Assembly: GCA_043228905.1 (NCBI GenBank)
Contig: JBHGNT010000008.1
Coordinates: 3,410,001 to 3,474,000 of the forward strand
DNA: 64,000 nucleotides
Direction of reading: 5' to 3'
Origin: Azolla caroliniana
Lineage: Eukaryota > Plantae > Polypodiophyta
Both the position numbers and the translations under genes were made by a program. The notes under the pieces are model-generated. The model had not been told where the DNA came from. It was given only the letters and a program-made list of their open reading frames with translations, and searched no databases. Below, in pieces: positions 4,410 to 64,000 of this stretch; positions within the stretch are counted from its first letter, which is position 1; each line of letters opens with the position of its first letter.

Positions 4410-5750
4410 TCAGAATTGTATGGAGCAATGCTTACCTGCAGATACATATGTATTAGCCATAAGGACATGAGCTGAAGCAAAATGATTATTGAGTTGTAGT
4501 AGTTGATTGAACGCAAACCTTCCGAGCTCAACATTTCCCCATCTTTTACAAACACTCAAGAGTGCGAGCCAAAGAGGAGGATAATCTGATGATGGCATTG
4601 TCCTAATCATAGCCATGGCTTTGTCAAAGTGTCCAGCATGTCCAAAACTAAAAACCATGGAAGTGCAATGCTCTAAATTTGTTGTTATGCCATACTCTCC
4701 ACTCATTTTTTTAAAATACAATTGGGCCTCATATAACCTTGTCTGAGAGAATACTTTGAGAATACATAACAAACTTATGGCATCAGGAGAGATACCTTCC
4801 CTTCGCATCTGTTCAAAACAGTTTAATGCTTCTTGACCTTGCCCCTCACGGGCATATCCTGAAATAAGTGTATTCCAGGTCACAACATTTCGTGCCTGAA
4901 GCTCATGAAGAAGCACTTGCTTTGCCTTTGTAAGGGCACCGCATTTTGTATACATATCAACCAAAGCATTGCAGAGCTCCATATTTTTCTCTAGCAAGTT
5001 CTTAATGACAATCTCATTGTGAACTTGTTTTCCTGTGTTAATAGCTCCAGCACCACTGCAAGCAATCAAGGCAGAAGTGAATGTGATTACATCTGGAGAA
5101 AGGCCTTCACATTGCATACGCCTAATACTGATTAGTGTGTCATGAACTTTCCTCTCTCGCGCATACATTGCAATCAATGCATTCCAAGAGACAACGTCTC
5201 TAACAAGAAGCTGCAAATGTTGCTCTTGTGCTTTCTGAAGAAAACCACATTTCGCATACATATCCACCAAAGCAGTGCCAAGCACAACATCATTCTGTAG
5301 AAAGCCCATACTCACAATCCCATCATGAATTTGTTTGCCCTTATGAACATCAGATGTATTACCACAAGCCTTCAAAATACAAGTGAGCGTAATTGCATTT
5401 GGACAGACACCTTCCCTTTGCATCTCGTCAAAACAATCCAAAGCTTTTTGACCGTGCCCGTGTCGGGCATACCCTGCAATAAGAGCATTCCATGAGACTA
5501 CATTTCGAATTGGAATTCTCTCAAGTATTTGTCGTGCCTTTGCAAGCATGCCATGCTCCACATACATACTGATCAAATTGTTTGCTACAAAGGGGCTCTT
5601 TTTGGGAATGTCCTCTATGCTAATACATACTCTAGTGAACTCCTTGTTAGTACAAGACCTGAGAAAGTTCTCAATTGCAAAATCTTTCTTATCATTTTCA
5701 TTGTAAAGTTTCTCCTTGCCCATAGAGGATTTCCCATGACTGGGCCTCAC
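4410..5750 (-). CDS. PLS-class PPR protein (PPR-1), short array plus E1/E2, no DYW; probably degenerating
   Basis: 446-codon ORF with P (VVSWNALIAGYA), L (TLTCILKACG) and S (LGTALVDMYAKCG) motifs, then an E region (WLALLSVCKRWGNVELG). The ORF start is GTG, so the true start is uncertain. A decayed PDF-motif remnant lies in frame upstream, and a strong donor (GCAG|GTAAG at 4435) lies just before the stop. Confidence 0.8.
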   Translation of the reverse strand: MRPSHGKSSMGKEKLYNENDKKDFAIENFLRSCTNKEFTRVCISIEDIPKKSPFVANNLISMYVEHGMLAKARQILERIPIRNVVSWNALIAGYARHGHGQKALDCFDEMQREGVCPNAITLTCILKACGNTSDVHKGKQIHDGIVSMGFLQNDVVLGTALVDMYAKCGFLQKAQEQHLQLLVRDVVSWNALIAMYARERKVHDTLISIRRMQCEGLSPDVITFTSALIACSGAGAINTGKQVHNEIVIKNLLEKNMELCNALVDMYTKCGALTKAKQVLLHELQARNVVTWNTLISGYAREGQGQEALNCFEQMRREGISPDAISLLCILKVFSQTRLYEAQLYFKKMSGEYGITTNLEHCTSMVFSFGHAGHFDKAMAMIRTMPSSDYPPLWLALLSVCKRWGNVELGRFAFNQLLQLNNHFASAHVLMANTYVSAGKHCSIQF

Positions 5751-6877
5751 AGTTGCTTTTCCTTTGAGCTTGTGGAGAACACAATCAGAATTGTACTATC
5801 CACCAACACAGAACAATGTTTCATTAATTCTGTGTCAACGTTCTATCAAGTCCAGATTTGTGCTAGAATGAAGTCATTGATACACCAACTTGGTAAATGC
5901 ATTAAGACAATAATTTAGAACAGTGTTGACAAAGATTAGTGAGATAGTGTATGAACTTGAACCAAATCCTTGGGAAAAAAGTTGAGATGATGCTCCTCCC
6001 AGATATATCCCATACAAGTGCTCAAAGACATGATAATATTGGATAACCTTAATGCCAATGTCAGAAATATGCACAAGCATGCTGCAGAACTATTACTCCA
6101 TGGTACAATAAGAAAACAATGCACATAAACTTCTGTACGATTGGGCTGGGTCATCAATGGATAACGAGTCCAAACATAAGGCGTCATCATGATGAGAATT
6201 ATAAAGATTAAATATATAGTTGTGATAAATAAAACAGAGAAATTCGTATGTACAAATAGATTTACTTGCTTCACATTTAAGAATAATACATGCACACCAT
6301 GCCTTCATCAGTGAGAGATCAGGGAGATTCGAAATCATCATTACTATACATGGAGGATAGGGGTTGGTATACATCACTTGCACCCAAAGGCAATTTTACA
6401 GTGTATTTTTTCACGCAGTATCTATCCATGTCATATATCACTTGACAGATATGCTAGATGAGCATTTATCATTGTCAGCATTACAACGTCAGTCTTTGTT
6501 ATTAAATTTACCTTTTGTACCTTTGTCATTTTCATTTGTTTTAGATACATGATTTGTTACATAAGCTCATTTTGAAATCTCCAAGAGGTAAAACAAATTG
6601 TTTCTTTATCTCTTTTCTCGTGCTCAGTGGGCATATCTCTCTCTAAAGGAACTGCAATTCGTGTTTCTACTCTTAGAGATACAGAGACAGAGGAAAGAGG
6701 ATAGATTTGATGTGTGTATTTAGTACAAATAAAAATTAGAAGCACGTGACCCAGATAGCTGAACCGTCAACAATACAAGATAGTGATTGTGTCTCTTCCA
6801 AGCAAAATTTTGGGAATAAGGCTGACCTGAATTTAGCAATGAAATGTGTTCAATTTTATGTCTTTTTTTTTTCATTT

Positions 6878-7137: not shown

Positions 7138-8670
7138 TCACTCTCTCATACACACAAACAAGCAGATGATAAGTAAAAGAAGTTCCATGTTCCTCACCTT
7201 AGCACTGTGACTATCAAACCAGGGGAATGATTGGAAATGAAGGCCATCATACTCATTCAAGCAGACTTCAAATTTAGCGTACATATCCCTCAAAGCAGTC
7301 TCAAGAAGGCTATCTTTCTCCAGGAATCCTCTAGTAATTATCTCATGGTGAATTTGTTTGGCCTTGTCCCTATCTCTAATGCTCCCACAGGCCTTCAGGA
7401 TACAGGTGAAGGCGACTTCATCAGGAGAGAAACACTCATTTTGCATCTGTTCAAAGTAGTTTAACGCTTCACAGAAGTATCCTTGTTCTGTATAGCCTGC
7501 AATCAATGCAGACCAACTGACTACATTTCTACAAGGAAGCTCATCAAGCACTTGTTTTGCTTTTTCGAGCACACCACATTTGGCATACATATCCACCAAG
7601 GCCGTGCCAAGAGCAGTATCTTTCTCCAACAATCTTCTTTGGGCAACCTCATTGTGTATCTGTTTGCCTTTCTCAAACGATTTTGTACTACCACACGCTT
7701 TCAGACCACAAACGAAGGTAACGGTATCTGGAGAAAGCCCCTCCATTTGCATCTGATCAAAGCATTTTAATGCCTTATAACCTTGTTCTTGTTGTGCATA
7801 CCCTGCAATTATTGCATTCCAGGAGACCGAATCTCGAATAGGAAGCTCATCATGCACTTGTTGTGCCTTTACAAGCATACCGCATTTCGCATACATGTCC
7901 AACAAAGCATTCCCCAGCATAATATGGTCCTCAAGCAAGCCTCTAGTCAAAATCTCATGGTGAACTTGTTTGCCCTTGCAGATGTCTCCTGTTTGGCTAC
8001 AAGCCTTTAGGATAGAGACATAGGTGACAACATCTGGAGAGAGGCACTCGGTCTGCATCTGTTCGAAACACTTAAAAGCTTCATATGCTTGCCCTTGCTG
8101 TACATATCCATCAATAAGTGCATTCCAAGACACTACAGTTCGAACCGCAATCGTGTTAAGCACTTCCTCAGCCCTTGTGAGCATACCACACTTAGCATAC
8201 ATATCCACCAGAGCAGTGCCAAGCAGAACATCTTTATGTAGAAAGCCTCTGTGTGCAATCTCTTCATGAATTTGTTTTCCTTTCTCGAGATCTCTTAGGC
8301 TACCGCAAGCTTTCAAAGCACAAGTAAAGGTGATCGGATCAGGAAGAAGACCCTCGTTTTGCATATGATCAAAGCAATCCAGAGCTTTGCGGCCTTGCCC
8401 TTGTTGAGCATACCCTGCAATGAGAGCAGACCAAGAGACTTCATTTCTACAAGGGAGATCATCAAGGATCGCATGTGCTTTTCCAATCATACCACATTTG
8501 GCATACATGCTAATTAACGAGCTAGCTACGTAAGGATTCTTTTGGAGTAAACCCTTCTTCACAATCACGGCATGTAGTCGAGCGCCTCCCTGCGCGTCTC
8601 TGTTCTTGCCACAAGATTTGAGAGATTCAACAATGGTACAATCTTCACTGATGTAGCCGCCATATCTCAT
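7138..8670 (-). CDS. PLS-class PPR protein (PPR-2), C-terminally truncated (no P2-L2-S2/E/DYW)
   Basis: 510-aa ORF of ~102-aa P-L-S triplets. It breaks off inside the fifth S-type motif (ETALRDMYAKF) into unrelated sequence. No PDF motif is seen upstream. Telo-box AAACCCTAA near 8706-8715 on the minus strand. Confidence 0.85.
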   Translation of the reverse strand: MRYGGYISEDCTIVESLKSCGKNRDAQGGARLHAVIVKKGLLQKNPYVASSLISMYAKCGMIGKAHAILDDLPCRNEVSWSALIAGYAQQGQGRKALDCFDHMQNEGLLPDPITFTCALKACGSLRDLEKGKQIHEEIAHRGFLHKDVLLGTALVDMYAKCGMLTRAEEVLNTIAVRTVVSWNALIDGYVQQGQAYEAFKCFEQMQTECLSPDVVTYVSILKACSQTGDICKGKQVHHEILTRGLLEDHIMLGNALLDMYAKCGMLVKAQQVHDELPIRDSVSWNAIIAGYAQQEQGYKALKCFDQMQMEGLSPDTVTFVCGLKACGSTKSFEKGKQIHNEVAQRRLLEKDTALGTALVDMYAKCGVLEKAKQVLDELPCRNVVSWSALIAGYTEQGYFCEALNYFEQMQNECFSPDEVAFTCILKACGSIRDRDKAKQIHHEIITRGFLEKDSLLETALRDMYAKFEVCLNEYDGLHFQSFPWFDSHSAKVRNMELLLLIICLFVCMRE

Positions 8671-9880: not shown

Positions 9881-10363
9881 ACTCGAGTTTTATAACCACG
9901 CCGAACCGTTTATTGATCATCCAAACCACTTTAATTATTCTGGAACCGATAAATCGTTAAACCATGGCTTAACGGTTTCGTTCAGTTTGAGCCAAAACCA
10001 GAGCTGTCGATTGCCCCAAACTGAGCTTCAAAGCTTCCATTGCCGTAACAAGCGTCTCAATTGGCTGGGTTAATTTTGTAATTTCTACTATATAAAAAGA
10101 CTATGTTTGCTGGTTAGGTTCGGTTTGAACCGAAACCAGCAAACAAAGAAGCATTGGATGAGTTTCCAGAATTGGCTGGGCTAATTTTGTAATTTCTAAC
10201 ATATTAGAAGACTAGGTTTGGAAATGAGAAATAACACACGCATTCTTTGCTCTGATTGTAGACACAGCAAGCAGCAGCAGCAAACCCACACCCAGAGTAT
10301 GTACTATGCAGAAGAACAGAGGCCTCTGAAAATTCTGACCATCGACATGCATCGAAACCGCAG

Positions 10364-12775
10364 ATGTGGAAGGAGAAAAGCTGCAGCTATGGCAGGATGG
10401 ATCTCCTGTGGAGGGAGTATTTCATGGATCCTTCTGTATGGATCGATAGTCGGAGCAGTAAGGTCGTAAAAGAGAGAGAGAGAAAGAGATGATTTCTTCT
10501 TTACAGAATGGGAACTCTGTCATTAGTTTTTTAATCTTAAGCTAGGTTTTTAAGTGTTGATATTCATGGTTTTCCCCTACAGAAACTAGAGCAATATCAT
10601 TTCGGAGGTTTTTAATTTTGAGGCCACCTGAAAATTCTGATGGTATCTTGCTTCACTCTTTCTTTACAGAGTAGCTCCAAATTTCCAGATTTCAAACATA
10701 AAACGAATTGTGAGCCTTTATGGATCGATGGATGGTGCAACCCGTTTTGGGTTCATGAAGAGGTGAAGAGACAAGGAATTGTTGTACCGATAGGAATTCT
10801 TGACAAAGGGGTAGTGAGTGAAAACCTTCAACAAGAATGCCATGCTTTCATGACCTTACTTAAATCTTGTACCTTAAAGAAGGATCTTAATGAGGGTTGT
10901 AGACTACATGCTGAGATTCTCAAAAGAGGATTACTTGAAAACAATCCTTACCTTGCTAGTTCTTTGATCAATATGTACTCCAAATGTGGATTGCTTGCAA
11001 AAGCGCAAAAAGTGCTCGAAGTGCTTTGTGTTCGAAATGTGGTCACTTGGTCAGCATTGATTGGTGGGTATGCTCAACAAGGGCAAGGTCATGAAGCATT
11101 GGAATGTTTTGAACAAATGAAAAGGGAGGGAATCTTTCCAAATATGGTCACTTTCACATGCATTTTAAAGGCGTGTGGGAGCACAGGATCCATAAAAAAA
11201 GGTGAACGGATACATCATGAGATTATAAGCAAGGGCTTGTTAGAAAAGGATATTATACTCGGTACTGCTTTGGTGGATATGTATGCAAAATGTGGGGTGC
11301 TCACAAAGGCACAAAATGTGCTAGAAGAGCTTCCTGCTCGAAACCTTCTCTCTTGGTCTGCTCTCATTGCAGGATATGCCCAACAAGGGCAAGGTCATGA
11401 AGCATTGAACTGTTTTGATCGGATGGAAAGTGAGGGGTTCTCTCCGAATGCAGTTACTTTCATTTGCATATTGAAGGCTTGTGGTAGCATAGGGGCTATA
11501 GATAAAGGTAAACAAATCCACGAACAGATTGTAAGTAGGGGGCTGTTAAAGAATGATATTGTGCTTGGAACTGCTTTGATGGACATGTATGCTAAATGTG
11601 GCGAGCTTGGAAAAGCCAAACAGGTTCTTGAAGAGCTTTCTATACGAGATATTGCCTCTTGGAATGCACTCATTTCTGGGTATGCCCAGCAAGGACAAGG
11701 AGATGAAGCACTGAAGTGTTTTGATCAAATGCAAAGCGAAGGTTTCTCCCCAAATGCAATCACTTTCATTTCTATTCTAAAAGCATGTTGTTGCACAGGA
11801 ACTCTAGAAAAGGGAAAAGAGATTCACAAAGAGATTATGAGCAGGGATATACTGGAACATGATTACGTGCTTGGCAATGCTTTGGTTGACATGTATGCCA
11901 AATGCGGCGCGCTTGCCAAAGCACAAGAAGTGCTCAAAGAGCTTGTTTTTCAAGGTGTAACATCTTGGAATGCATTAATTGCAGGATATGCACAACGTGG
12001 TCGATGCCATGAAGCAATGGAGTGCTTCGAACAAATGCAAAGTAAGGGCCTTTCAGCAAATGAAATCACTTTCATTTGCATTTTAAAAGCCTGTGGTAGC
12101 AAAGGAGCACTGGAAAAGGGCAAAGAAATTCATGATGAGATTTCTAGTAGGGGATTGGTGCAGAAGAATATTGTACTCGGGACTGCTTTGGTAGATATGT
12201 ATGCCAAATGTGGTGTTCTGGCAAATGCACAAAAAGCACTCAATGAGCTTCCAGTTCGAAATGTAGTCTCATGGAATTCGCTAATTGCCGGTTACTCCCA
12301 TCAAGGACAAGGTGAAGAAGCACTGAACTGTCTTCAATTGATGCAAAGAGAAAGCATTTCTCCAAATTCTGTTACACTCTTGTGTGTTTTGAGTGCATGT
12401 AATCGTTCAGGACTATTGGATAAAGCTCGAATTCTCTTTGAAAACATGACTAGGGAGTACGGTATTATGCCAAATGTAGAGCATTATAGTTGTATGATGG
12501 TTAGCTTTGGATGTGCTGGGCATTTTGACAAAGCCATTTCAGCTCTTAAGTTGATACCATCTTGTAAGTGTCTAGCAGTTTGGCTTGCACTTCTAAGTAC
12601 TTGTAGAAAATGGGGAAATGTAAAGCTTGGAAGGATGGCTTTTTATCAGGCAGTTGAACTAGATAGGGATTGTGGTACAGCTTATTCTCTTATGGCTGAG
12701 ATTTTTGCAGCTGCTGGTATGCAAGACGATGCAGAAATGGTTAAATCCATGAGATTGAAATATGATGTGGTTTGA
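10364..12775 (+). CDS. PDF-motif/PLS-E PPR fusion protein (PPR-3); exons 10364-10462 and 10670-12775, 734 aa
   Basis: Exon 1 reads MWKEKSCSYGRMDLLWREYFMDPSVWIDSRSSK. A phase-0 GT..AG intron spans 10463-10669 (acceptor cttcactctttctttacag). Exon 2 starts SSSKFPDFKHKTNCEPLWIDGWCNPFWV, then five MY(A/S)KCG S motifs, P2-L2-S2 and E1/E2. A further upstream exon is possible (acceptor-like AG at 10260-10261 with the frame open). Confidence 0.85.
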
Positions 12776-13113
12776 AGAAGCAAAGCAATAACGTTGGGGG
12801 TGGAGGGGGGATGCAAATGCAAGTAAGTATATTTACTCATTTCCTGCCGAGATTGCAAAGCATTTACAAAATGATGATAAATATAGAACTAAAATGTGCC
12901 ATTTGGCAAATAGTGGGTGATTAATCACGAAATCCATAATCAAGGAAACATGAGGACAAGCTTTTGGCAGAACAGGGGAAGTTCTGAAGGATTCTTTCAT
13001 AGTGTGGAAGACAGATGCTTTTAACATATTTTCATAGAACAGCATTATTGATATCAGGATTTCTGCTCGAAGAAATTGGAAGTGAATCGCAGAAGAAATG
13101 AGGAGAATGTAAT

Positions 13114-15006
13114 AGAGTTGGTCTAGGATGAAGGGCTAACTTGGCCACGGAAAGCTTCAGAGGAGATGAAACCAAAAAGGTGTACATCTGACCTCAGTCA
13201 GTATGGTTGTCCAACAGAAACCTGAAGGTCATGCCTTCAACCCCTATATAATGTAGTGTTATCTAGTAAATTAGTCAGATATGATCCTTTAGACACGTTC
13301 AACCTCTACATTCTTTAAGATTATCTACAAAATTGTGGGATTTGTTCCCCTGCATTCCACCAGGTCACATTGTAAATTAGTAGGATTTCATCCCAGGGGC
13401 TTGGAGTTTAGCAGACCTGGTATGTTCATGTTAACTATACATGTTTGGTAGTAATGATTGATGATATGGATGTGATGTTTGATGCACCAACATCCTGCAA
13501 TTATATGATATGATTATGTGAAAGGAGTTCTTGTATGTATAAGAAGTGGATGAGATGATACAAAGCCTTAATATCAAGAGGATATTAATGAAACATGTTT
13601 CAGAGATTGGTGCCAAGGAGTTTGCAAATGTAAATAAGGGAAAGAAGAAGAAGAATCACAAAGAAAAGAAAATTTGTTAATTGCTCGCACAGGGGAATTG
13701 GAGGATTGTACAAATATGTTACATTCTTGTACATGCATTGTGAATTGACCTGGAATTAACAGTGCCATTTTTGCAGGCTTATTTTGACTCGAATGTATCT
13801 ATCTTACCCACGATTCCCAACTCCACCTAACTTAGAATACCTGTGTACTACAAAATATAAATCCAAATAACCAGCCATTCCTCCTAAACTGGACTGATGG
13901 GAAGTTTGTCACTTAACTGCTCAAGAAACTTTTTTGTGTTTTGATAATATTCCCTAGTACTGATTGTTTCTTAGGAGAATATCTCTTCACTACTGACTGT
14001 GTCAATAGATGAAACACTAAAACACAAAGTAAGCAATATCATGAGACCTATAATTTAGATGCAAAAACCTTTGTTCTAAGAGTTGGTCTAGGATGAAGGG
14101 CTAATTTGGCCACTTAAAGCTTCAGAGGAGATGAAACCAAAAAGGTGTACATCTGATCTCAGTCAGTATGGTTGTCCAACAGAGACCCGAAGGTCATGCC
14201 TTTAACCCCTATATTATATAGTGTTATCTAGTAAATTAGTCAGATATGATCCTGTAGACACGTTCAACCTCTACGTTCTTTAATATTATCAACAAAATTG
14301 TGGGATTTGTTCCCATGGACACATGTTCATCCCCTGCATTCCACCAGGTCACGTTGTAAATTAGTGGGATTTCATCCCAGGGGCTTGGAGTTTAGCAGAT
14401 CTGGTATGTTCATGTTAACGATACATGTTTGGTAGTACTGATTGATGATATGGATGTGATGTTTGATGCACCAACATCCTGCAATTATATGATATGATTA
14501 TGTGAAAGGAGTTCTTGCGCGTATAAGAAATGGATGAGATGATACGAAGTCTTAATATCAAGAGGATATTAATGAAACATGTTTCAAAGATTGGTGCCAA
14601 GGAGTTTGCAAATGTAAGGGAAAGAAGAAGAAGAATCACAAAGAGAAGAAAATGTGTTAATTGCTTGGAGGATTGTAAAAATATGTTACATTCTTGTACA
14701 TGCATTGTGAATTGACCTGGAATTAATAGCGCCATTTTTGCAGGCTTATTTTGGCTTGAATGTATCTATCTTGCCTGTGTACTACAAAATATAAATACAA
14801 ATAACTGGACATTCCTCCTAACTTGACTGATGGGAAGATTGTCACTAAACTGCTCAAGAAACTTTTGTGTTTTGATAATATACCCTAGTACTGATTGTTT
14901 CTTAGGAGAATATCTCTTTACCACTGACTGTCAATAGATGAAACACTAAAACACAAAGTAAGCAATATCATGAGACCTACAATTTAGATGCAAAAACCTT
15001 TGTTCT
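13114..15006. repeat. Direct tandem duplication of ~0.95 kb (13114-14077 and 14079-15006)
   Basis: Both copies start AGAGTTGGTCTAGGATGAAGGGCTAA and end GCAAAAACCTTTGTTCT. They are colinear with a few indels, and their ORF-track products pair up (13574/14415). Confidence 0.95.
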
Positions 15007-16119
15007 GCGATATATTTATGCTTTTTTCGCCTGTGGGGTTGTCTTTCATTTCCCTTCTCCTTTCTCATTAAATTGGATTTAAGAACCAAATTAAACCGAT
15101 TACAAATAGGAACATCAAATTTGATAAGGACTTAAAATATTACTGAAAAGAACTGAAGTATGGATATGAGTATGTTTCCTCATTATATAACTAAAAGAAC
15201 CAAAACTTGATTGCTATCTTCATAAAATTCAAGCATGACCACAAGAAACTAAAATATGGACATGAGTATGCATCCTCATTTAAGAAACCAAACTTGAACA
15301 CTATCATTACATAGAAATTGAGAACAAATTTATAAACTAACCACGAGGACCAAATATGAACGTGAGCCTCAAGTAATCAGACTCATGCATCACTGAAAAC
15401 AATTAAAACAGGATTCTATTTCTGTAGCTTTATTTTTAAATTATAAAATAGAACATGAAATTTATAACTTGCATAGGGTATTGCATTCCGGATAAGCTGA
15501 AGTATGCCTTTTGAACTTCAAGACTGGTAATACAAAACCTTCTTTCATTCACCTATATGGAAGTAGCTTTCATAACCACAAAAAATATTTTTGTCAACTT
15601 TTATCAACTGCTCAAATGCATCTTTTCCCGATTTCAGCTTTCCATGGATCCTTCATCACTGTGAAAGTTTAAGCTGAGGTGTGGTGTCCATACATTCCAT
15701 GTTAGCATTCACAACTTAAGATGCGATATGATGCAATTACATCACATGTTAGCTAATTTACATCAGGCCTAATTTCCATCTTCAAAATCATGTAGACAAT
15801 TTAGACATATGACAACAAAATCACACTCGTCTATTTTAGATACAAGCGATGTAGCAATATGGTAGTCGTCACACATCTTCATGTTATTTGTATGGTGTAT
15901 AATTTTCTTCTTCTTTGATATGTATTTATGAGAGCAGAGGCAATTGACAACATCTCATTTTCTTCATTGAAAATGTATATTGAGATGTTATTTGTATGGT
16001 TTGTAGTTTCTTCATCTTTGGTATGTATTCTTCCTCCCTTCATTGAAAATGTTTTGTGACACCAAAAAGTAGCTCCAGAACATGAACTTTAATAGCTTTC
16101 ATCTTTGCATACGTACCTT

Positions 16120-19098
16120 TCACCTGAGAAAGATTTCTATCCCCAAATGAATATCTCCACTCATATCTACAGACTCACAATTTCCTTCCTTCCAGCTGGC
16201 ATATTTCAATCTCATTGCTTCAACCTTTTCTGCATCCTCTTGCATGCCAGAACCTGTGAAAATTTTAGCCATAAGAACATAAGCTGCTGAGCAAGTGTTA
16301 TCTAATTGCACTGCCTGATCAAACACCAACCGCCCAAGCTTCACATTTCCCCATTTTTGACAAGAACCTAACAGAGCAAGCCAAATTACTGGATATTCTG
16401 ATGACGCTGATGCCTTAATCAGAGATATTGCATTATCAAAGTGTCCTGCACATCCATAAATAATGACCATGCAAGTATGATGCTCTAAGTTGGGAGTAAT
16501 ACAATATTTTCTAGTCATATTCTCGAAAAGCAATTGGGCATCATACAATAGACCTGAATGACAGCATGCATTCAGAACACAGAGGCATGTAACTTCATCA
16601 GGTGAGAGACCCTCATTCTGCATTTGATAAAAACAGTTCAATGCTTCACAGCCTTGTCCTTGTTGAGCATACCCTGCAATCAGTGCATTCCAAGAGACTA
16701 CATCTTGCACAGCAATTCCTTCAAGAACCTGCTGTGCTTTTATAAGCATGCCACATTTTGCATACATATCAATCAAAGCAGTGCCAAGCATGGTATCCTT
16801 TTCTAGCAATTGCTTTTTGATGATCTCATCATGAATTTGTTTGCCCTTATCTATAGCTCCGGCACTGCCACAGGCTTTCAAGCTACAGATGAAGGTGACT
16901 ATGCTAGGAGATAGGCCCTCACTTTGCATCCGCTCAAAGCAATTCAGTGCTTCATGGCATTGACCTTGATCAGCATATCCTGATATAAGGGTAGACCAAG
17001 ATATTGCATTCCGAACTGGAAGTTCTTCTAGTACCTTGTGTGCTATTGCAAGTTCACCACATTTGACGTACATCCCAACTAACGCATTACCAAGCACAAT
17101 ATCTTTCTCCAGCATTCCCCTACTTAAAATCTCTTTGTGAATTTTCCTACCTTTGTCCAGCGCTCCCATACTGCCACAAGATGTCAGTATGTGAATGAAA
17201 GTGACCACAGTGGGAGAGAGGCCCTCACTTTGCATGCTTTCAAAAGAGTTCAATGCTTCACAATTTTTCCCCTGTTCAGAATAACCTGCAATAAGTGCAG
17301 ACCAACAAACTACATCCCGAATATGTAGCTCTTCCAACACCTGTTGGGCCTTTGCAAGTTCACCACATTTTGCATACATATCTACCAACGCAGTGCCGAG
17401 CATAATATCCTTCTTCAATGAACCCCTATTTACAATGTCTTCATGAATTTGTTTGCCCTTGTCTATAGCTCCTGTGATACCACAGGCCTTCAACGCACAA
17501 GTTAAGGTAACCACATCAGAAGTCAGACCTTCACTTTGCATCCGTTCGTAGCAATCCAGTGCTTCACAACATAGCCCCTGTTGTACATATCCTGCAATTA
17601 GTGCACACCAAGATTTATCATTTCGAACCGGAAGCTCTTCAAGCACCTCTTGTGCTTTCAAAGGAACGCCACATTTGGCATACATATCCACTAAGGCAGT
17701 GCCAAGCAAAATATCCTTCTCTAGCAAGCCTCTACTTGCAATCTCATCATGAATTATTTTCCCCTTTTCTAAAGCTCCTGTGCTGCCACAGGCCTTCAAG
17801 ATGGAGGTAAAAATAACCTCATCTGTCGGGAATCCCTCTCTTTTCATCCTATCAAAGCATTTCAGTGCTTCATGACCTTGCTCTTGATGAACATATCCTG
17901 AGATTAGAGCAGACCAAGAGACTGTATTTCGAATAGGAAGATCGTCAAACAGATTTTGTGCTTTCACAAGAAAACCACATTTCGCATACATATCTATAAG
18001 AGCAGTGCCAATGACAACACTCTTTTCCAAAAATCCACCCCTCACTATCACATCATGAATTCGTTCCCCATCATCTATGGCACCAGTAGAGCTACATGCC
18101 TTCAAAATACCAACGAAGCTTACTATATTTGGAGAGATGCCTTCAGTCTGCATTTCCTCAAAACAGTTAAACGCTTCATGACAATTCCCTTTTTGAGCAT
18201 ATCCTGAGATTAATGCATTCCAAGAGACTACATTTCGAATAGGAAGAATATCGAGCACCTCGTGAGCTTTAACAATTGCTCCACATTTTGCATACATATC
18301 CACCAAAGCAGTGCCAAGCACAATATCCTTCTCTAACAACATTCTATGCACAATCTCATCATGAATCTGTTTACCCATATTTATATCTTGGGTGTTCCCA
18401 CACGCCTTTAAGATGCATGTTAATGTGATTGCATCTGCATAGTGGCCCTCGTGTTGCATTCTTTTGAAACAAGTTAATGCTTGATGCATTTGCCCTTTTT
18501 GAACATACCCTACGATCAATGCAGCCCATGATACAACATTTCGAGTAGGAAGCTCGTCGAGCACTTTTCTTGCTTTTGCGAGTTCTCCACATTTGACATA
18601 CATGCTAATTATAGTGGTCGCCAGATAAGGATTCTTCTCAACCAGCCCTTTATCCAGAATATTAGTATGTAATCTACTACCCACAAGGAGATCTTTCTTC
18701 TTGGCATAATTCTTGAACAATTCCACAAGAGCGAACTCTTCCTTGCGTTTTCCATCAATAATCTCGTATTCATGATTTCCCTTTGCGCATAGAACAATCT
18801 CTCTTCTGAACAACTCTTCACAAACCCAAGAGGGGTTGTACCATGCATCAATCCACAAAGACTGGCAAGTAGTTTTATGAGTAAAATCTGGTGATCTGGA
18901 AGAACACTAGTGGAAAACTCTCTCTCTCTCTCTCTCTCTGTATATATCTATCTATCTACCTATCTATCTATCTCCATCTCATATATAAACAATACATACC
19001 TTGGTACTACAACTGTGGCACCAGAGAGAAGGGTCCTTGAAATACTCCTTCCATAACCAGTCTACCCTTTCGCCATTTGATCTCTGCTGCTTCCCCAT
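16120..19098 (-). CDS. PDF-motif/PLS-E PPR fusion protein (PPR-4); exons 19098-19000 and 18906-16120, 961 aa
   Basis: Exon 1 reads MGKQQRSNGERVDWLWKEYFKDPSLWCHSCSTK. The donor is AAG|GTATGT, the 93-nt phase-0 intron spans 18999-18907 and the acceptor is ttttccactag. Exon 2 starts CSSRSPDFTHKTTCQSLWIDAWYNPSWV, then seven S motifs, P2-L2-S2, E1/E2 and a short PG-box-like tail. An in-frame TGA lies 11 codons upstream of the ATG. Confidence 0.88.
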
Positions 19099-19204
19099 GG
19101 ATTCTGCGCTTTCCTGACGTTGTTCATTTCATCAGAATTTCTGTGAGAATGATCACAAGAAGCACCTGCCCCTCATAAGCTCTCAAACAAATTTTCAAGG
19201 CTTT

Positions 19205-23494: not shown

Positions 23495-26400
23495 TCAGCT
23501 GGTAGGAGGAACAGAGGTGGTGGCCAAGACAGCCGAAGTGGTGGCGGTGGCGGTGGTGGTGCTCGATCGCGCCTGCTGAATGTTGACGAGCCGAGCGTAC
23601 GGCCCATCGGCATTCTTCATGAGCTCCGCGTGCGGCCCTTGCTCCACGATCTTTCCCTCCTGGATCACGGCTATGAGGGACGCGTTCCGTATCGTGGACA
23701 GCCGGTGGGCCACCACAATGGTCGTGCGCCGCCTCATCAGCCGGTCCAACGCCTCCTGGACCACCTTCTCTGACTCCGCATCCAATGCCGACGTCGCCTC
23801 GTCCAGCAGAAGAATGGCCGGGTCCTTTAACACCGCCCTCGCGATCGCGATCCTTTGCTTTTGCCCGCCCGATAGCTGCACCCCCCTCTCCCCTACCTTT
23901 GTCTCGTAGCCCTCGGGCATCGCGCTTATAAAGCTATGGGCATTTGCTGCCTTGGCCGCCTCCTCCACCTCCGCCCCTTTCGCCGCCTCCCTCCCGTAGA
24001 GTATATTCTCATAGATGCTCGTCGCGAACAACGCTGGCTCTTGTTGCACTAGCCCTATATGTTGCCTTAGCGACTTCAAATGGAGCCTTTTGATGTCCTT
24101 CCCGTCGATCATCACTCTCCCTGCTTGCGGATCGTAGAACCTCTCTATCAGAGCGATCACAGAGCTCTTCCCAGATCCGCTCGCCCCAACCAAGGCCAAG
24201 CTGTGGCCAGCTCTCACCCTCAGTGTTAGATCTTTGAAGATGGAAACCTCGGGCCTCGCTGGATATGCAAACTCCACATGCCGTAGCTCGATGTCGCCCT
24301 TCACTGAGCTCAACCTCTCGCTATTCGGCTCTTCCGGATCGATAAGGGTTCGACGATCGAGGATCGAGAATACCGAATACAGTGCCTCTCCCCCTTTCAC
24401 AATGTCCGGGGTCATGCTTAGGGTTTCGGCGACCGCATAGGCCGTCACCATGAGGACCATGAACACCTTGAGCACTGGCCCAAAGCCACTTTCCCCATTC
24501 TTGACTAGCGTTGAACCATACCATAGCGCAAGGCCATAGCTCGAGAACATGGCCATTTGCGAGACACCATAGAAGAAGCCTGCTATGTTACCCCGCATCA
24601 GGCTTCGCCGCTCAGGTATCTTCAGTTCTTGAGCAAAGAGATCGACCACTTTCTCTTCTGCATTGAATGCAGCTACCGTTCGTATGTTGCCGATCGCCTC
24701 GCCTGATACCATGCTTGCACGCTCATGTGCACCCGCAACATCACCGGAGAAGCCTTTCATACAAAACCTCTGGCATGAAGAAAGCAAAGACAGAGAAGAT
24801 GGAAGATATGAACAACAGCCCACCATAATTTCAATGAAACAGCCCCAGATGTAATGTGATGTGATGCCATATAGATACCTCGGCTACGGCAGCGGCAACA
24901 AGGAGAGGGAACGTGCCGAGGACCACTAATGCCATTCTCCATTGCACCACAAATGCCACAATGCATGCAGTGAGAAAGACAGTTATATTTTGTACAATGA
25001 TGGAGAGTCTATCTCCTATTGCGGCTCGGACATTGGTCGCATCAGTGGACAAGCGTGTTGCAAGACGGGCACTTGAGTTCTCCTCTCGATCGAACCATCC
25101 CACCTCATTTTTCAAGATGGCTGCACAGAAACAATAAGAGTCATCAAGAAAGATCTGTGAGAGTCGAAGGAAACTATATAAACATGGCAAGGATAAAGGC
25201 TGCATTGCACACTCACAGCTGAGCATCATTTTGCGAACTCGATTCGTTAGGTTCTCTCCCATGATGCCGAAGTAATAGTATTGCACATAATAGATGCCGA
25301 GGGAGGCAATACCAGCGCCCACAAACACTAAAGAACACTTCTGAATCTCGCGGGTCATCCGTTCGTGATCTTTCTCATAGTAGATCCGAAGCATTTCACT
25401 AAGAACAACAGCAAAGATCGGGTTAAGGAGCCCTGCTAGAATAGAGCCTGCAGTACCCACCACAGCATATGGCCACTCAGGTGCATTGAGCTGTACAAGC
25501 CGCCAGTAAGTGCCTCTCGGGACATTATAAAGGCCCTCTTCCACAACAATATTGCCACCCATCTTTTGAATATCAAACTCGAATCTACTTTCGGATCCAG
25601 TGCTTAATTGATGGCTAAGCCTGCGGCCACTATTTGAGCGAAGGCTAGGCGATCTCCGCCCCGACTTCGAAGAACTAAGCCGCCCTAGAACTCCCGCCCT
25701 ACGAAAGAAAAAGAGCCCCAAAGACATCAAATAATGTGTGCATATAGCAATCTAGAAAACAATTATATGCCAAACCCTAGCTTTCGAGATTTTTACCTCG
25801 AATCCCGACTTAAGATTGTTCCATCACATGCCATGGCCATCTCCTGGAGCCTCACTAATGCAAAGTAGGAACCTGTGTTTCCCTTCCCCATTAGCTCCTC
25901 ATGGTTGCCCATCTCCACTATCACTCCATCTTGTACAACAGCGATGGTGTCCACATTCCGAATCGTGGACAACCTATGAGCCACCACAACAGTTGTCCTT
26001 CCAACCATCAACCTGTCCAATGCTTCTTGCACCACACTCTCGGATGCCGAATCTAATGCACTTGTAGCTTCATCCAGCAACAAAATCTTTGGATTCTTGA
26101 GCATTGCCCTGGCTATGGCCACTCTTTGTTTCTGTCCCCCCGACAACTGAACTCCCCGCTCGCCCACCTGTGTTTTTTGTCCATATAAATATAATCATCA
26201 TACAATATTCGTTATATTCGTTGAGCAATGCCTTATGTGCTAAAGTCCATAACAGATTATGATTACAAATGTGACGCAGTGCCAAAGCTTGTCCATTATA
26301 TTGATAACCTTAAGTTCATAGTCTAATGACACTTATCATTGTAAAAAGTATTCATATTTTGACTCTGAGATCATTACACCAACAATTTAACAAACACCTT

Positions 26401-61100: not shown

Positions 61101-64000
61101 ACCGGGCCTTGTACCGGTTAACTGAACCGTCGGCGTTGTACTTTACCTTGTACACCCACTTACATCAGATCGGTTTACAACGTCGGGGAGGGTCGACTAG
61201 GTCCCACGTGTCGTTGGCATCAAGTGCCCGCATCTCTTCCTCCATAGCGGCACGCCAATGTGCGTCGTTTGCCGCTTCTGCGTAGCTCCTCGGCTCACGC
61301 ACTTCCGCCACCTTGGTCATGTACGCATAGTGATGCGCCATGTACTCATTGTACCCGTACCGCTTAATAGGTTCCTTCTGGCGGGTTGACCGGTGTAACC
61401 CATTGTTACCCGGTTTGAGGCCCTTCTTGGCCGGTTCGGTCTTCGGTGCCGAAGAACCATCGTTTTTCTTTCCGGAGTCAGATCCGCTCAGATCCGACTC
61501 ATCATTACCGGTTTCATAATCCGACATCTTCTTCTTCCCCTTCTCTTTGCGCATAAACCGTCTCCTCGGTTCCTTGCGTGGGGAGAGCACGACAGAGTCT
61601 TCACTACTCGCCGGTTCCTCTTCTGACTGGTCGGATTGACCCAGTCTCTCGTTCGGCCCACTCAACCGAAACAATTCCGGACTCTCTTCTTGAGTCCCGG
61701 ATTCATCATCTTCTAGCTGGACCGGTTCAGGCTCACTAGCCTCATCCTCCTGTATCGGGTTGGGGTCGGAAGTCGGAGCCAGTAAGGCATACCATGATGC
61801 CGTCTCATCAAACTCCACATCCTGGCTAACTCGGACCTGCTTCGTCCGAGGGTTGTAACATTTATACCCCTTTTGCTCATGCGAGTAATCGACTAGGCTG
61901 CATTTCTCCGACTTTGCATCCAACTTCCTTCGCTTCTTATCCGGTACATGCACATATGTAGTGCTACCGAATATCCGAAGGTGTCACAAATTCGGCTTGC
62001 GCCCGAAATACAGCTCATGCACGGACACCTTGTCACCGATCTTGTTTTGGATGTAAATGACCATCCGGACCGCCTCCGCCCAGTAGAAATGGGGCATGCT
62101 CTTCTCTTTCAACATTGCCCTTGCCGTGTCGACAAGCAACCAGTTCTTCCTTTCGGCCACACCATTTTGCTCTGGTGTGTATCTGCAACTGAACTCTCTC
62201 CGAATTCCTGTTTGCTGCAGATAACTGTTGAATTGGCCGGAAAAGTATTCTTTTCCACCATCTGACCGCAGGCACTTGATCTTCCTCTCTGATTCCCGTT
62301 CCACCATGCTTTGGAGGTTCCGGAAACAGTTGAAGACTTTGCTCTTCCGCTCAATGAGGTAGATCCATGTGTGTCGGCTATAGTCGTCAATGAAGGAGAC
62401 GAAGTATCGACTCCCGCCAAGACTCACGTTCTGTGCCGGTCCCCATACATCCGAATGAATAAGGTCGAGCTTGTTACGACTACGGTTTCATTCGGTGGGG
62501 AATGGAAGCCGGTGTTGCTTCCCGAGTTGGCAGGCTTCACATACTTGGGCCTTCCGGCCACTGAACTTCGGCAAACCGAAAACAAATTGTTTCGATTGCA
62601 GGTCTTGAAGCCTCCGGTAATTGACGTGGCCGATCCGCTTGTGCCAGAGATCGATGTCCGATTCAATCTTCTATCCTTTGGCGAACAAAGAGGTGCCGAC
62701 GTCATTGGTGTTGAGGATGAATATCCTCCCGTTTCTGCGCCCTTGCGCAATAATCTGGCCCTCCTCCTCGATGAAGCACCCGAGGTGCGTAAACCGCACC
62801 TGCATTCCCTGGTCGACGATTTGTCCAACTGACACCAGGTTCTTCGTGATAGTCGGAACGTGTAATACGTTCATAAGCTTCCCCCTCTGTCTGACATGGC
62901 TCAAAGGGACTTCACCGATATGCACGATAGGGTGAGGAGTGTCATCTCCGGTTTTGACAACTCCCAGTTGTTCCGGTTTCTCCAGGAAGGAGAACCACTC
63001 CTTGTGGTTCGTCATGTGATTTGAAGCACCGGAATCAACATACCATACGTCCTCTGATTTGGAAGTGGTCTTCTTCATCGAATTTGCCTCGTGCTTCATC
63101 ACCAAGGTAGGCCCCTTACTGGCTTTTCCGGTTTTGGATCCTCCCGATCCTTCTGCGTAGTGCGAGTATTGCCAGTTCTCATGACCGGTTTTGTCGGATC
63201 TAGATCTGTCCGAATCGGCGCGCTTCTTCTAGCACTCGCTTTCTCTGTAGCCCTTTTTGCCACAGTACCAACATTCCGTGGCGGATTTGTCTTGCCGGTC
63301 TCCGGCGCTACCTTGACTCCCCTTGGTTGTGGATGTCCCGGAATTGCTATCGGCATGGTCTCTGTGCCGTCTTTCCTGCTCTTGCCGGCCGCCTCTAGTG
63401 TGTGCTGACCCGCCTCGTCCACCACGCCCACGGGGCCAATCCGCCTCCGTGTATAACATCCGGCTGTCAATGGGTGCATTTGTTGACGCACCGGCGTGGT
63501 TCTCCTCTACAAGGAGCATTGACTGTAAGTCGAAAAATGACGGTGTAATCTCCCTCGTACAGACCGCCGTTCGGAAAGCTCCGAACCTGGACGCTAACCC
63601 ACCAAGTCACACTTGCACCATCTCATCCTCCTCGACGTTTACATTGCCGGAGGTGAGTGAGTCACAAATTTCCTTGATTCGGGCCGTGTAATCGGCCACA
63701 AACAGATTTTTCTGTCGGACATTGCTAAGCTCCTGCCTGAGCTGCAACTTCCTGGCCGTTGTGCTTGCAGCAGAAACCTTCTTCAGGTTTCCCCAAACTT
63801 CTTTTGGCATCTTGGCATCTCAGATATGGCTTACCAGCTGGTCTCCGACACTGGACACAAAGCAGTACATCACTCTGCTTGCCGATTGTTCCCACACAGG
63901 GAAGTCCTTGTGTGTCGCATCAGGTGTTGTGTCGTTAGCTCCGTCGACATAGCTCCAATACCCATGCCCAAGCAGGTACTGGTGCATCTTGTAAGACCAA
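58195..64000 (-). mobile_element. Ty1/Copia element B: gag-PR-IN-RT-RNase H plus 3' LTR (58580-58195); 5' end outside the window
   Basis: Motifs CWYCGKKGYRESEC, WYVDSGASNHM, YFVSFIDDYSR, EQNGVAER, RYKARLV, HQMDVKNAFL, LLYVDDL, DADWAGD and TKHIEVHYHFVRE. PPT GAGGGGGAG at 58589-58581 abuts an LTR running TGTTGA...TCTACA. Several frameshifts. Confidence 0.95.
59938..60543. mobile_element. AT-rich non-autonomous DNA-transposon-like insertion in the Copia B RT
   Basis: Abrupt AT-rich block between RT codons HYVLN and KLCPNSEP. The minus-strand end reads CATAGATTGACATATTCGCATTCG with repeated ATTCG/CGAAT motifs. Internal inverted repeats are present; no TSD found. Confidence 0.6.

Follow-up and report, generated by a model that had tools for sequence, protein, structure and literature searches.

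A 64-kb stretch of Azolla caroliniana DNA (contig JBHGNT010000008.1, positions 3,410,001 to 3,474,000; here called the window and numbered from its first letter) contains two convergent pentatricopeptide repeat (PPR) genes, PPR-3 and PPR-4, in which a short first exon and a long second exon together encode a PDF domain, homologous to that of the OSB proteins, in front of a PLS-class PPR array. This PDF-PPR combination is a real, old and apparently undescribed domain architecture. We think it moderately probable that the two genes are paralogous members of an old land-plant PPR subfamily of the PLS class, in which the N-terminal PDF domain acts as a single-strand clamp.

In the program-made list of open reading frames (ORFs) the two loci are represented by long PPR ORFs at 10640-12775 (+) and 16120-18858 (-). 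The sequence-only reading had joined a 99-nt exon to each of them, and the peptides, coordinates and splice signals at both loci are exactly as it had them. In PPR-3 the 99 nt amount to 33 codons, the last of which is AAG. Both introns are in phase 0 and both follow the same invariant Lys of the PDF domain, at the same profile position, as had been claimed for the two paralogues. The domain so interrupted is ∼ 55 residues long, follows the pattern W..P..WWDNR..K..PDFKHK..LW..P.WV and lies ∼ 25–30 residues ahead of the first PPR repeat.

A PDF profile built from other species only, with no window sequences (profile A4), detected the exon-2 halves with E-values of 1.2e-12 (PPR-3) and 2.8e-13 (PPR-4) and the exon-1 halves with 4.2e-7 (PPR-3) and 5.1e-4 (PPR-4), at the profile positions listed in Table 1. 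Because all four exon pieces are detected independently, the likeness to the PDF domain is not due to chance. Moreover, when the exon-1 and exon-2 pieces are aligned jointly with the uninterrupted motifs of the relatives, they meet without gap or overlap. PPR-3 retains all 15 of the 15 invariant or near-invariant residues of the domain. Aromatic and basic residues (W, W, W, W, F, K, R, H, K) make up the set that is invariant in PPR-borne and OSB PDFs alike. Six-frame scans of the 64 kb, by regular expression and by profile, gave no further PDF match.

A query with residues 1-120 of the exon-2 product retrieved the Adiantum capillus-veneris protein GOP47_0020297 (P0002), which has the complete motif at its annotated N-terminus. 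Residues 1-72 of P0002 matched an Aristolochia protein in which five PDF repeats accompany an SSB-like region (E 2.4e-38); PPR proteins from Ceratopteris and from the moss Ceratodon were matched as well. A second profile, made from PPR-borne PDFs only (A3) and searched against 1.84 billion representatives, matched 1066 of them at E ≤ 0.001, including clusters named by NCBI as ‘protein OSB3, chloroplastic/mitochondrial-like’ from Lupinus (E 2.1e-65) and Chenopodium (E 2.2e-58). The OSB likeness proposed from the sequence is therefore borne out by both profiles. Pfam has no PDF model, and it reports zero families for OSB-like proteins with 5 and 13 PDFs; its matches in the window genes are confined to the PPR repeats and the E motif, with none on the N-terminal pieces.

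The AF2 model of the PDF domain (predicted local distance difference test score 88) consists of a helix, three short strands and a C-terminal helix. In the ESM Atlas this model matches one SSB-family cluster with a template modelling (TM) score of 0.82 and three PPR or DYW clusters (127, 63 and 57 members) with TM scores of 0.82-0.87, so that the kinship suggested earlier also emerges from the comparison of predicted structures. Searches for solved relatives of the model gave none (Foldseek best E 3.4; VIA-align wide best Z 3.6). Two ESM Atlas clusters of hypothetical tailed-phage (Uroviricota) proteins, 187-199 residues long, resemble the model with TM scores of 0.60-0.66 over ∼ 60 residues; these matches may offer a clue to where the fold came from, or may simply reflect a common small arrangement. 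An internal duplication of the motif was considered and is not supported (hhalign probability 8% over 12 columns); it had been suggested by a MAFFT run with a single full-length reference, which misaligned the exon-1 pieces to the second half of the motif. In the literature, PDF motifs are described as restricted to green plants. However, profile A3 matched a protein of the dinoflagellate Effrenium voratum (Symbiodiniaceae; P0013, with further members in its cluster) that has nine PDF repeats and neither an OB nor a PPR part (E 1e-91).

The OSB proteins of Arabidopsis (OSB1-4, of which OSB2 is PTAC9) are organellar, and their C-terminal PDF is homologous to that of the window proteins and has the same predicted fold (TM 0.82). 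The window proteins differ in that no SSB-like OB domain precedes the PDF. Indeed, phmmer with the OB region of the OSB-like protein P0008 retrieved 59 OSB-like proteins and zero PPR proteins, and Pfam gave no SSB match in the window proteins. In addition, whereas OSB PDFs are C-terminal and repeated, the window PDF is single and N-terminal, is interrupted by an intron, unlike those of Chenopodium OSB3, and stands in front of a PLS PPR array; the window proteins also have no evident transit peptide. PPR-borne PDFs depart from those of seed-plant OSBs at some positions, among them KHKxTK versus KHKxTGE and LWID versus LWL. The window proteins share a domain with the OSBs and are not OSBs.

Transcripts, splicing and the state of the two genes

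Contigs from four public runs were aligned to window positions 10300-16299. The PPR-3 junction is bridged by two of them, each from a different study (X2 record 17 and X4 record 24, ∼ 97% identical to the window); they join 10460 to 10668, which equals the predicted 10462/10670 since AG repeats at both ends. Contigs of all four runs gave zero coverage of the PPR-3 intron and of intergenic positions 14700-15500, and because of this the runs behave as RNA. A further contig, X13 record 9, is mismatch-free to the window (100% identity) and ends at 10460 with 28 unplaced letters, at a point where a DNA contig of the same genotype would have continued into the intron. PPR-3 splices as predicted. A pyrimidine tract precedes the AG acceptor of its intron, and an in-frame stop lies upstream of the start at 10259, 35 codons before the Met. 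The word gaaaattctga is found in the PPR-3 leader at 10329-10340 and again within the intron at 10629-10640, just before an in-frame ATG at 10640, and a similar word, gaaattctga, is present in the PPR-4 leader at 19140-19130 (-). The recurring word may be an alternative start, or what is left of a leader duplication.

In PPR-4 the predicted intron is full of (GATA)n and (GA)n microsatellites. A TAG stop at 18909-18907 abuts exon 2 on its upstream side, and the first Met of the exon-2 frame does not come before residue ∼ 102; 18907|18906 is therefore the sole acceptor that would give a protein. A stronger-looking rival acceptor, ttccag|, lies 11 nt inside exon 2 and is out of frame, leading to a stop after 6 codons. 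The in-frame stop upstream of the PPR-4 start, at 19131, is 11 codons before the Met, and the 3′ flank of the gene is covered by contigs (15593-16146).

Downstream of the PDF domain, PPR-3 has five P1-L1-S1 triplets and PPR-4 has seven. The triplet period is 102 residues (306 nt) in both genes, with motifs of ∼ 35, 36 and 31 residues, and Pfam PPR, PPR_1, PPR_2 and PPR_3 reach E-values of 1e-100 in the window genes. The E motif (PF20431) scores 30.9 bits in PPR-3, above the cut-off of 27.3, and 21.8 bits in PPR-4, below it; in PPR-4 the region is also matched by tblastn with the moss E1/E2 region (E 3e-7). In a Pfam search both ORFs lack PF14432, the DYW cytidine deaminase domain with its HxE and CxDCH zinc sites. 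However, a fossil of the C-terminal part of such a domain lies 235 nt past the PPR-4 stop, with 43% identity over 37 residues to the DYW domain of Ceratodon P0010 (tblastn, E 1.7e-5) and with the CxDCH zinc motif decayed to CDDYH. This fossil shows that PPR-4 descends from a DYW-type gene and that its lineage lost the deaminase fairly recently. The relic is now probably within the PPR-4 3′ untranslated region. PPR-3 and PPR-4 are PLS-class, E-subgroup, DYW-less descendants of a DYW-type lineage.

A comparison of the PDF codons of PPR-3 and PPR-4 gave 0.21 non-synonymous (pN) and 0.62 synonymous (pS) differences per site and a dN/dS (omega) of ∼ 0.18, in keeping with the expectation of purifying selection on the motif. 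Between the window and the transcript contigs of PPR-3, 18 variants were listed, 13 of them synonymous and five non-synonymous. PPR-3 is under purifying selection and looks like a working gene; the PDF domain of PPR-4 may be relaxing.

Distribution and origin of the fusion

The best 150 of the 1066 A3 representatives were inspected, of which 59 have an OSB-type OB domain and 14 a PPR array after one to three PDFs. The fusion was found in the ferns Adiantum, Ceratopteris and Pteridium (six transcripts), in the lycophyte Diphasiastrum at no fewer than four loci, and in the mosses Ceratodon and Sphagnum. Annotated relatives include Adiantum GOP47_0020297 and GOP47_0023879, Ceratopteris KP509_09G010600 and KP509_10G062000, Diphasiastrum O6H91_01G051500, 01G119900 and 21G032400, Ceratodon M758_8G001900 and Sphagnum jensenii CAK9868833.1, and the public labels of all such relatives are either hypothetical or generic PPR protein. 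Like the window genes, the fern and lycophyte relatives have a PDF followed by a PLS array and an E motif at the end, and the E-terminated, DYW-less form is the rule in Diphasiastrum, Adiantum and Ceratopteris. Unlike in the window genes, the number of PDF copies varies from one to three, and the Ceratodon protein has a full PLS-E-E+-DYW tail and a 105-residue leader. Leaders of 30-140 residues are found in Pteridium, Sphagnum, Ceratodon and some Diphasiastrum members. That the fusion has been kept from mosses to ferns, with many members, argues for a real function.

The intron position was compared between the window genes, Diphasiastrum P0183, Adiantum P0002 and Chenopodium OSB3. In Diphasiastrum P0183 a phase-0 intron follows the same Lys in both PDF repeats, whereas each of the four PDFs of Chenopodium OSB3 lies inside a single exon without that intron. 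Since the site is common to the window genes and the lycophyte members, it is ancestral to the subfamily and an old mark of the PPR-borne lineage. The Adiantum P0002 gene is intronless, with its PDF in one uninterrupted exon, and has thus lost the intron. A tree of the PDF motif (57 columns) is poorly resolved; 16 of 20 PPR-borne PDFs fall in one subtree (SH-aLRT 91) that also includes two OSB-like rows, and five label changes are needed, compared with 18.8 when labels are shuffled. The tree is compatible with one ancient fusion and does not prove it.

No paper connecting PDF with PPR was found in a full-text literature search. A 2022 catalogue of accessory domains in moss PPR proteins lists RRM, LAGLIDADG, SMR, NYN, CBS and SAP, and PDF is not among them (PMC9459714); OSB goes unmentioned in a kingdom-wide survey of editing-factor fusions from 2026 (PMC13386178), as does PPR in an OSB family survey of the same year (PMC13393729). 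Domain surveys of the PPR and OSB families, these included, pass over the fusion because Pfam has no PDF model. The proteins themselves are already present in public moss, lycophyte and fern annotations, and the architecture thus extends beyond this window.

Possible roles of the PDF domain

PPR tracts bind RNA in parallel, with the N-terminal repeats on the 5′ nucleotides. PLS-E proteins are site-recognition factors, and E-type PPRs, as in the angiosperm E-class editing factors, need partners for catalysis. In the mechanism proposed here, the PPR array would read a specific RNA in this orientation and the PDF domain would be an auxiliary, sequence-independent clamp whose invariant residues (Trp, Phe, Lys, Arg and His) hold single-stranded nucleic acid. 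The preferred ligand would be the stretch of RNA immediately 5′ to the PPR footprint, to which we give the larger share of our confidence in the clamp; the single-stranded DNA (ssDNA) of a transcribing nucleoid would be an alternative ligand of clearly lower probability. Such a clamp could raise affinity or position the protein where nascent RNA emerges, and PPR-3 and PPR-4, without a DYW domain, would be site-recognition or RNA-binding factors needing catalysis in trans.

The OSB proteins of Arabidopsis bind ssDNA (PMC6963530, PMC6451138), and the isolated PDF of OSB1 has been reported to be sufficient for this binding (PMC6963530). A similar design, a sequence-reading tract together with a second nucleic-acid module, is known from PPR4 of maize and Arabidopsis (RRM and PPR; distinct from PPR-4 of the window), from the PPR-SMR proteins and from PRORP (PPR and NYN), and in PPR4 the accessory module is also N-terminal (PMC9459714). 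The window proteins differ from these in the fold of the accessory module, in that the known ligand preference of PDF is for ssDNA, and in that the host is of the PLS rather than the P class. They share P1-L1-S1 triplets, the E motif and the absence of a DYW domain with the E-subgroup PLS PPRs, which recognise editing sites and have no DYW of their own, and add to these an N-terminal PDF and a very short leader.

Several observations weigh against the clamp. OSB1 and OSB2 prefer ssDNA over RNA (PMC4166229), which weakens the variant with RNA as ligand, and because the PDF fold has no solved relative its binding surface cannot be reasoned from structure. The PDF of PPR-4 reads WCHSC instead of the family WWDNR and lacks the invariant Asp23 and the near-invariant Arg25; the PDF-PLS-E architecture claimed for both genes is found in both, and its blemishes, this one and the E motif below the Pfam cut-off, are those of PPR-4. 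The PPR-4 junction 19000/18906 is only predicted, from homology and reading-frame logic. Out-of-frame ATGs lie upstream of the PPR-3 start at 10299 (one base before the leader part in Table 1), 10306 and 10347. In PPR-3, PPR-4 and Adiantum P0002 only ∼ 13 residues precede the PDF, with in-frame stops upstream, so that an organellar location is not evident; an additional coding exon may lie upstream of exon 1 of PPR-3 and PPR-4. Finally, loss of the DYW domain could mark decay.

These last points lead to the possibility, which we regard as unlikely but worth weighing, that PPR-3 and PPR-4 are remnants, in decay or neofunctionalised, that are still transcribed but have ceased to function as PDF-PPR proteins. 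The fossil behind PPR-4, its altered PDF and sub-threshold E motif, the stronger out-of-frame acceptor 11 nt inside its exon 2, the upstream ATGs and the lack of an evident presequence would all fit such a history. However, the ORFs of 701 and 928 codons are intact in an AT-rich genome, PPR-3 is correctly spliced and keeps all conserved PDF residues, both the low dN/dS of the PDF and the excess of synonymous over non-synonymous variants in PPR-3 speak for constraint, and the E-terminated form without DYW is usual in Diphasiastrum, Adiantum and Ceratopteris and hence a stable architecture. Remoter still, to the point of being negligible, is the idea that the OSB likeness is convergent or accidental and that the upstream 99-nt ORFs are not exons. 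Pfam is blank on the N-terminal pieces, and the first word-index search gave no candidate when queried with the PPR-3 exon-2 product (residues 1-45); the latter result reflects a limit of the index and is not evidence of absence. The idea is refuted by E-values down to 1e-65 against OSB3, by the separate detection of the exon pieces and by the contigs that bridge the PPR-3 junction; moreover, Adiantum has the same domain in one exon, and the silence of Pfam is that of a database with no PDF model.

A different role for a genuine PDF, to which we give a rather low probability, somewhat below that of the remnants, is that of a protein–protein or oligomerisation module, which might serve to recruit an OSB, some other nucleoid protein or a DYW deaminase acting in trans. 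The need of E-type PPRs for catalytic partners would suit this role, as would the formation of tetramers by OSB2 (PMC6963530) and the sequence departures of PPR-borne PDFs from those of seed-plant OSBs. On the other hand, the invariant residues have the aromatic and basic make-up that is usual in a single-strand binder, the OSB1 PDF is reported to bind ssDNA in isolation (PMC6963530), and moss members retain the PDF despite having a DYW domain of their own. Of comparably low probability is a bolder version of the clamp, in which the PDF-PPRs would be an undescribed class that couples sequence-specific RNA recognition to ssDNA, either in co-transcriptional editing or processing at the non-template strand or R-loops of organellar nucleoids, or in an action outside organelles for the fern members without a presequence. 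The earlier suggestion of an action at transcription bubbles, R-loops or on foreign nucleic acid is speculation.

Regardless of the exact ligand of the putative clamp, the PDF is a mobile domain and not a hallmark of OSBs. The fusion offers a handle on how PLS PPRs reach or hold their targets in plants without MORF-type helpers, and on whether PDF binds RNA besides ssDNA, and Ceratopteris or mosses provide systems in which these questions can be tested.

Features of the two loci and their neighbours

Table 1. Coordinates of the PPR-3 and PPR-4 features in the window, with the evidence on which each is based.
Feature	Position	Strand	Basis
PPR-3 leader, minimum extent, transcribed	10300..10363	+	collinear contigs 10300-10460; in-frame stop; sequence
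PPR-3 exon 1: Met, 13 residues, first PDF half from ∼ 10394	10364..10462	+	profile positions 6-29
PPR-3 intron, GT..AG, 207 nt, phase 0	10463..10669	+	sequence; skipped by two contigs
PPR-3 exon 2	10670-12775	+	sequence
PPR-3 second PDF half (PDFKHK...LWID...P.WV and C-terminal helix)	10670..10777	+	profile positions 30-64; alignment
PPR-3 PLS array, P1-L1-S1, bounds approximate	10847..12589	+	Pfam PPR families to E 1e-90; motif anchors; 306-nt direct repeats
PPR-3 E motif	12617..12748	+	PF20431; tblastn with moss E-DYW region
PPR-3 stop codon, no DYW domain before it	12773-12775	+	sequence
PPR-4 exon 1, 99 nt: Met, 13 residues, degenerate first PDF half	19000..19098	-	profile positions 5-28; in-frame stop 19131
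PPR-4 predicted intron, GT..AG, 93 nt, phase 0	18907..18999	-	sequence; profile position as in PPR-3 and Diphasiastrum introns
PPR-4 exon 2 (predicted)	18906-16120	-	homology and reading frame
PPR-4 second PDF half	18799..18906	-	profile positions 30-64
PPR-4 PLS array, seven P1-L1-S1 triplets, bounds approximate	16372..18729	-	Pfam; motif anchors; 306-nt repeats
PPR-4 E motif (sub-threshold), degenerate E2-like tail, stop codon	16120..16347	-	PF20431; tblastn to moss E1/E2
Fossil DYW, C-terminal part	15775..15885	-	tblastn with Ceratodon P0010 DYW; contig coverage

Two further PLS-class PPR ORFs, PPR-1 at 4410-5750 (-), which has an E motif, and PPR-2 at 7138-8670 (-), bring the number of PPR genes clustered within 15 kb to four. 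Profile search gave no PDF match for either of them. A fossil PDF upstream of PPR-1 (5751-5864) was considered and rejected; the profile misses it even at a domain E of 50, and the weak likeness seen by eye has its Trp codons changed to Cys or stop.

The spacer between PPR-3 and PPR-4 holds a tandem duplicate of ∼ 700 nt (13114-13808 and 14079-14775, 94-96% identity, spacing ∼ 970 nt), and contigs of several runs cover this element. Further along the window, ABC-transporter ORFs with ABC_membrane and ABC_tran domains lie at 23495-25730 (-), interrupted at 24826-24831; they probably belong to a single ABCB-type gene that contains either an intron or a frame break. A fragment of a retrotransposon, with an SH3_retrovirus domain, is located at 61165-61953.

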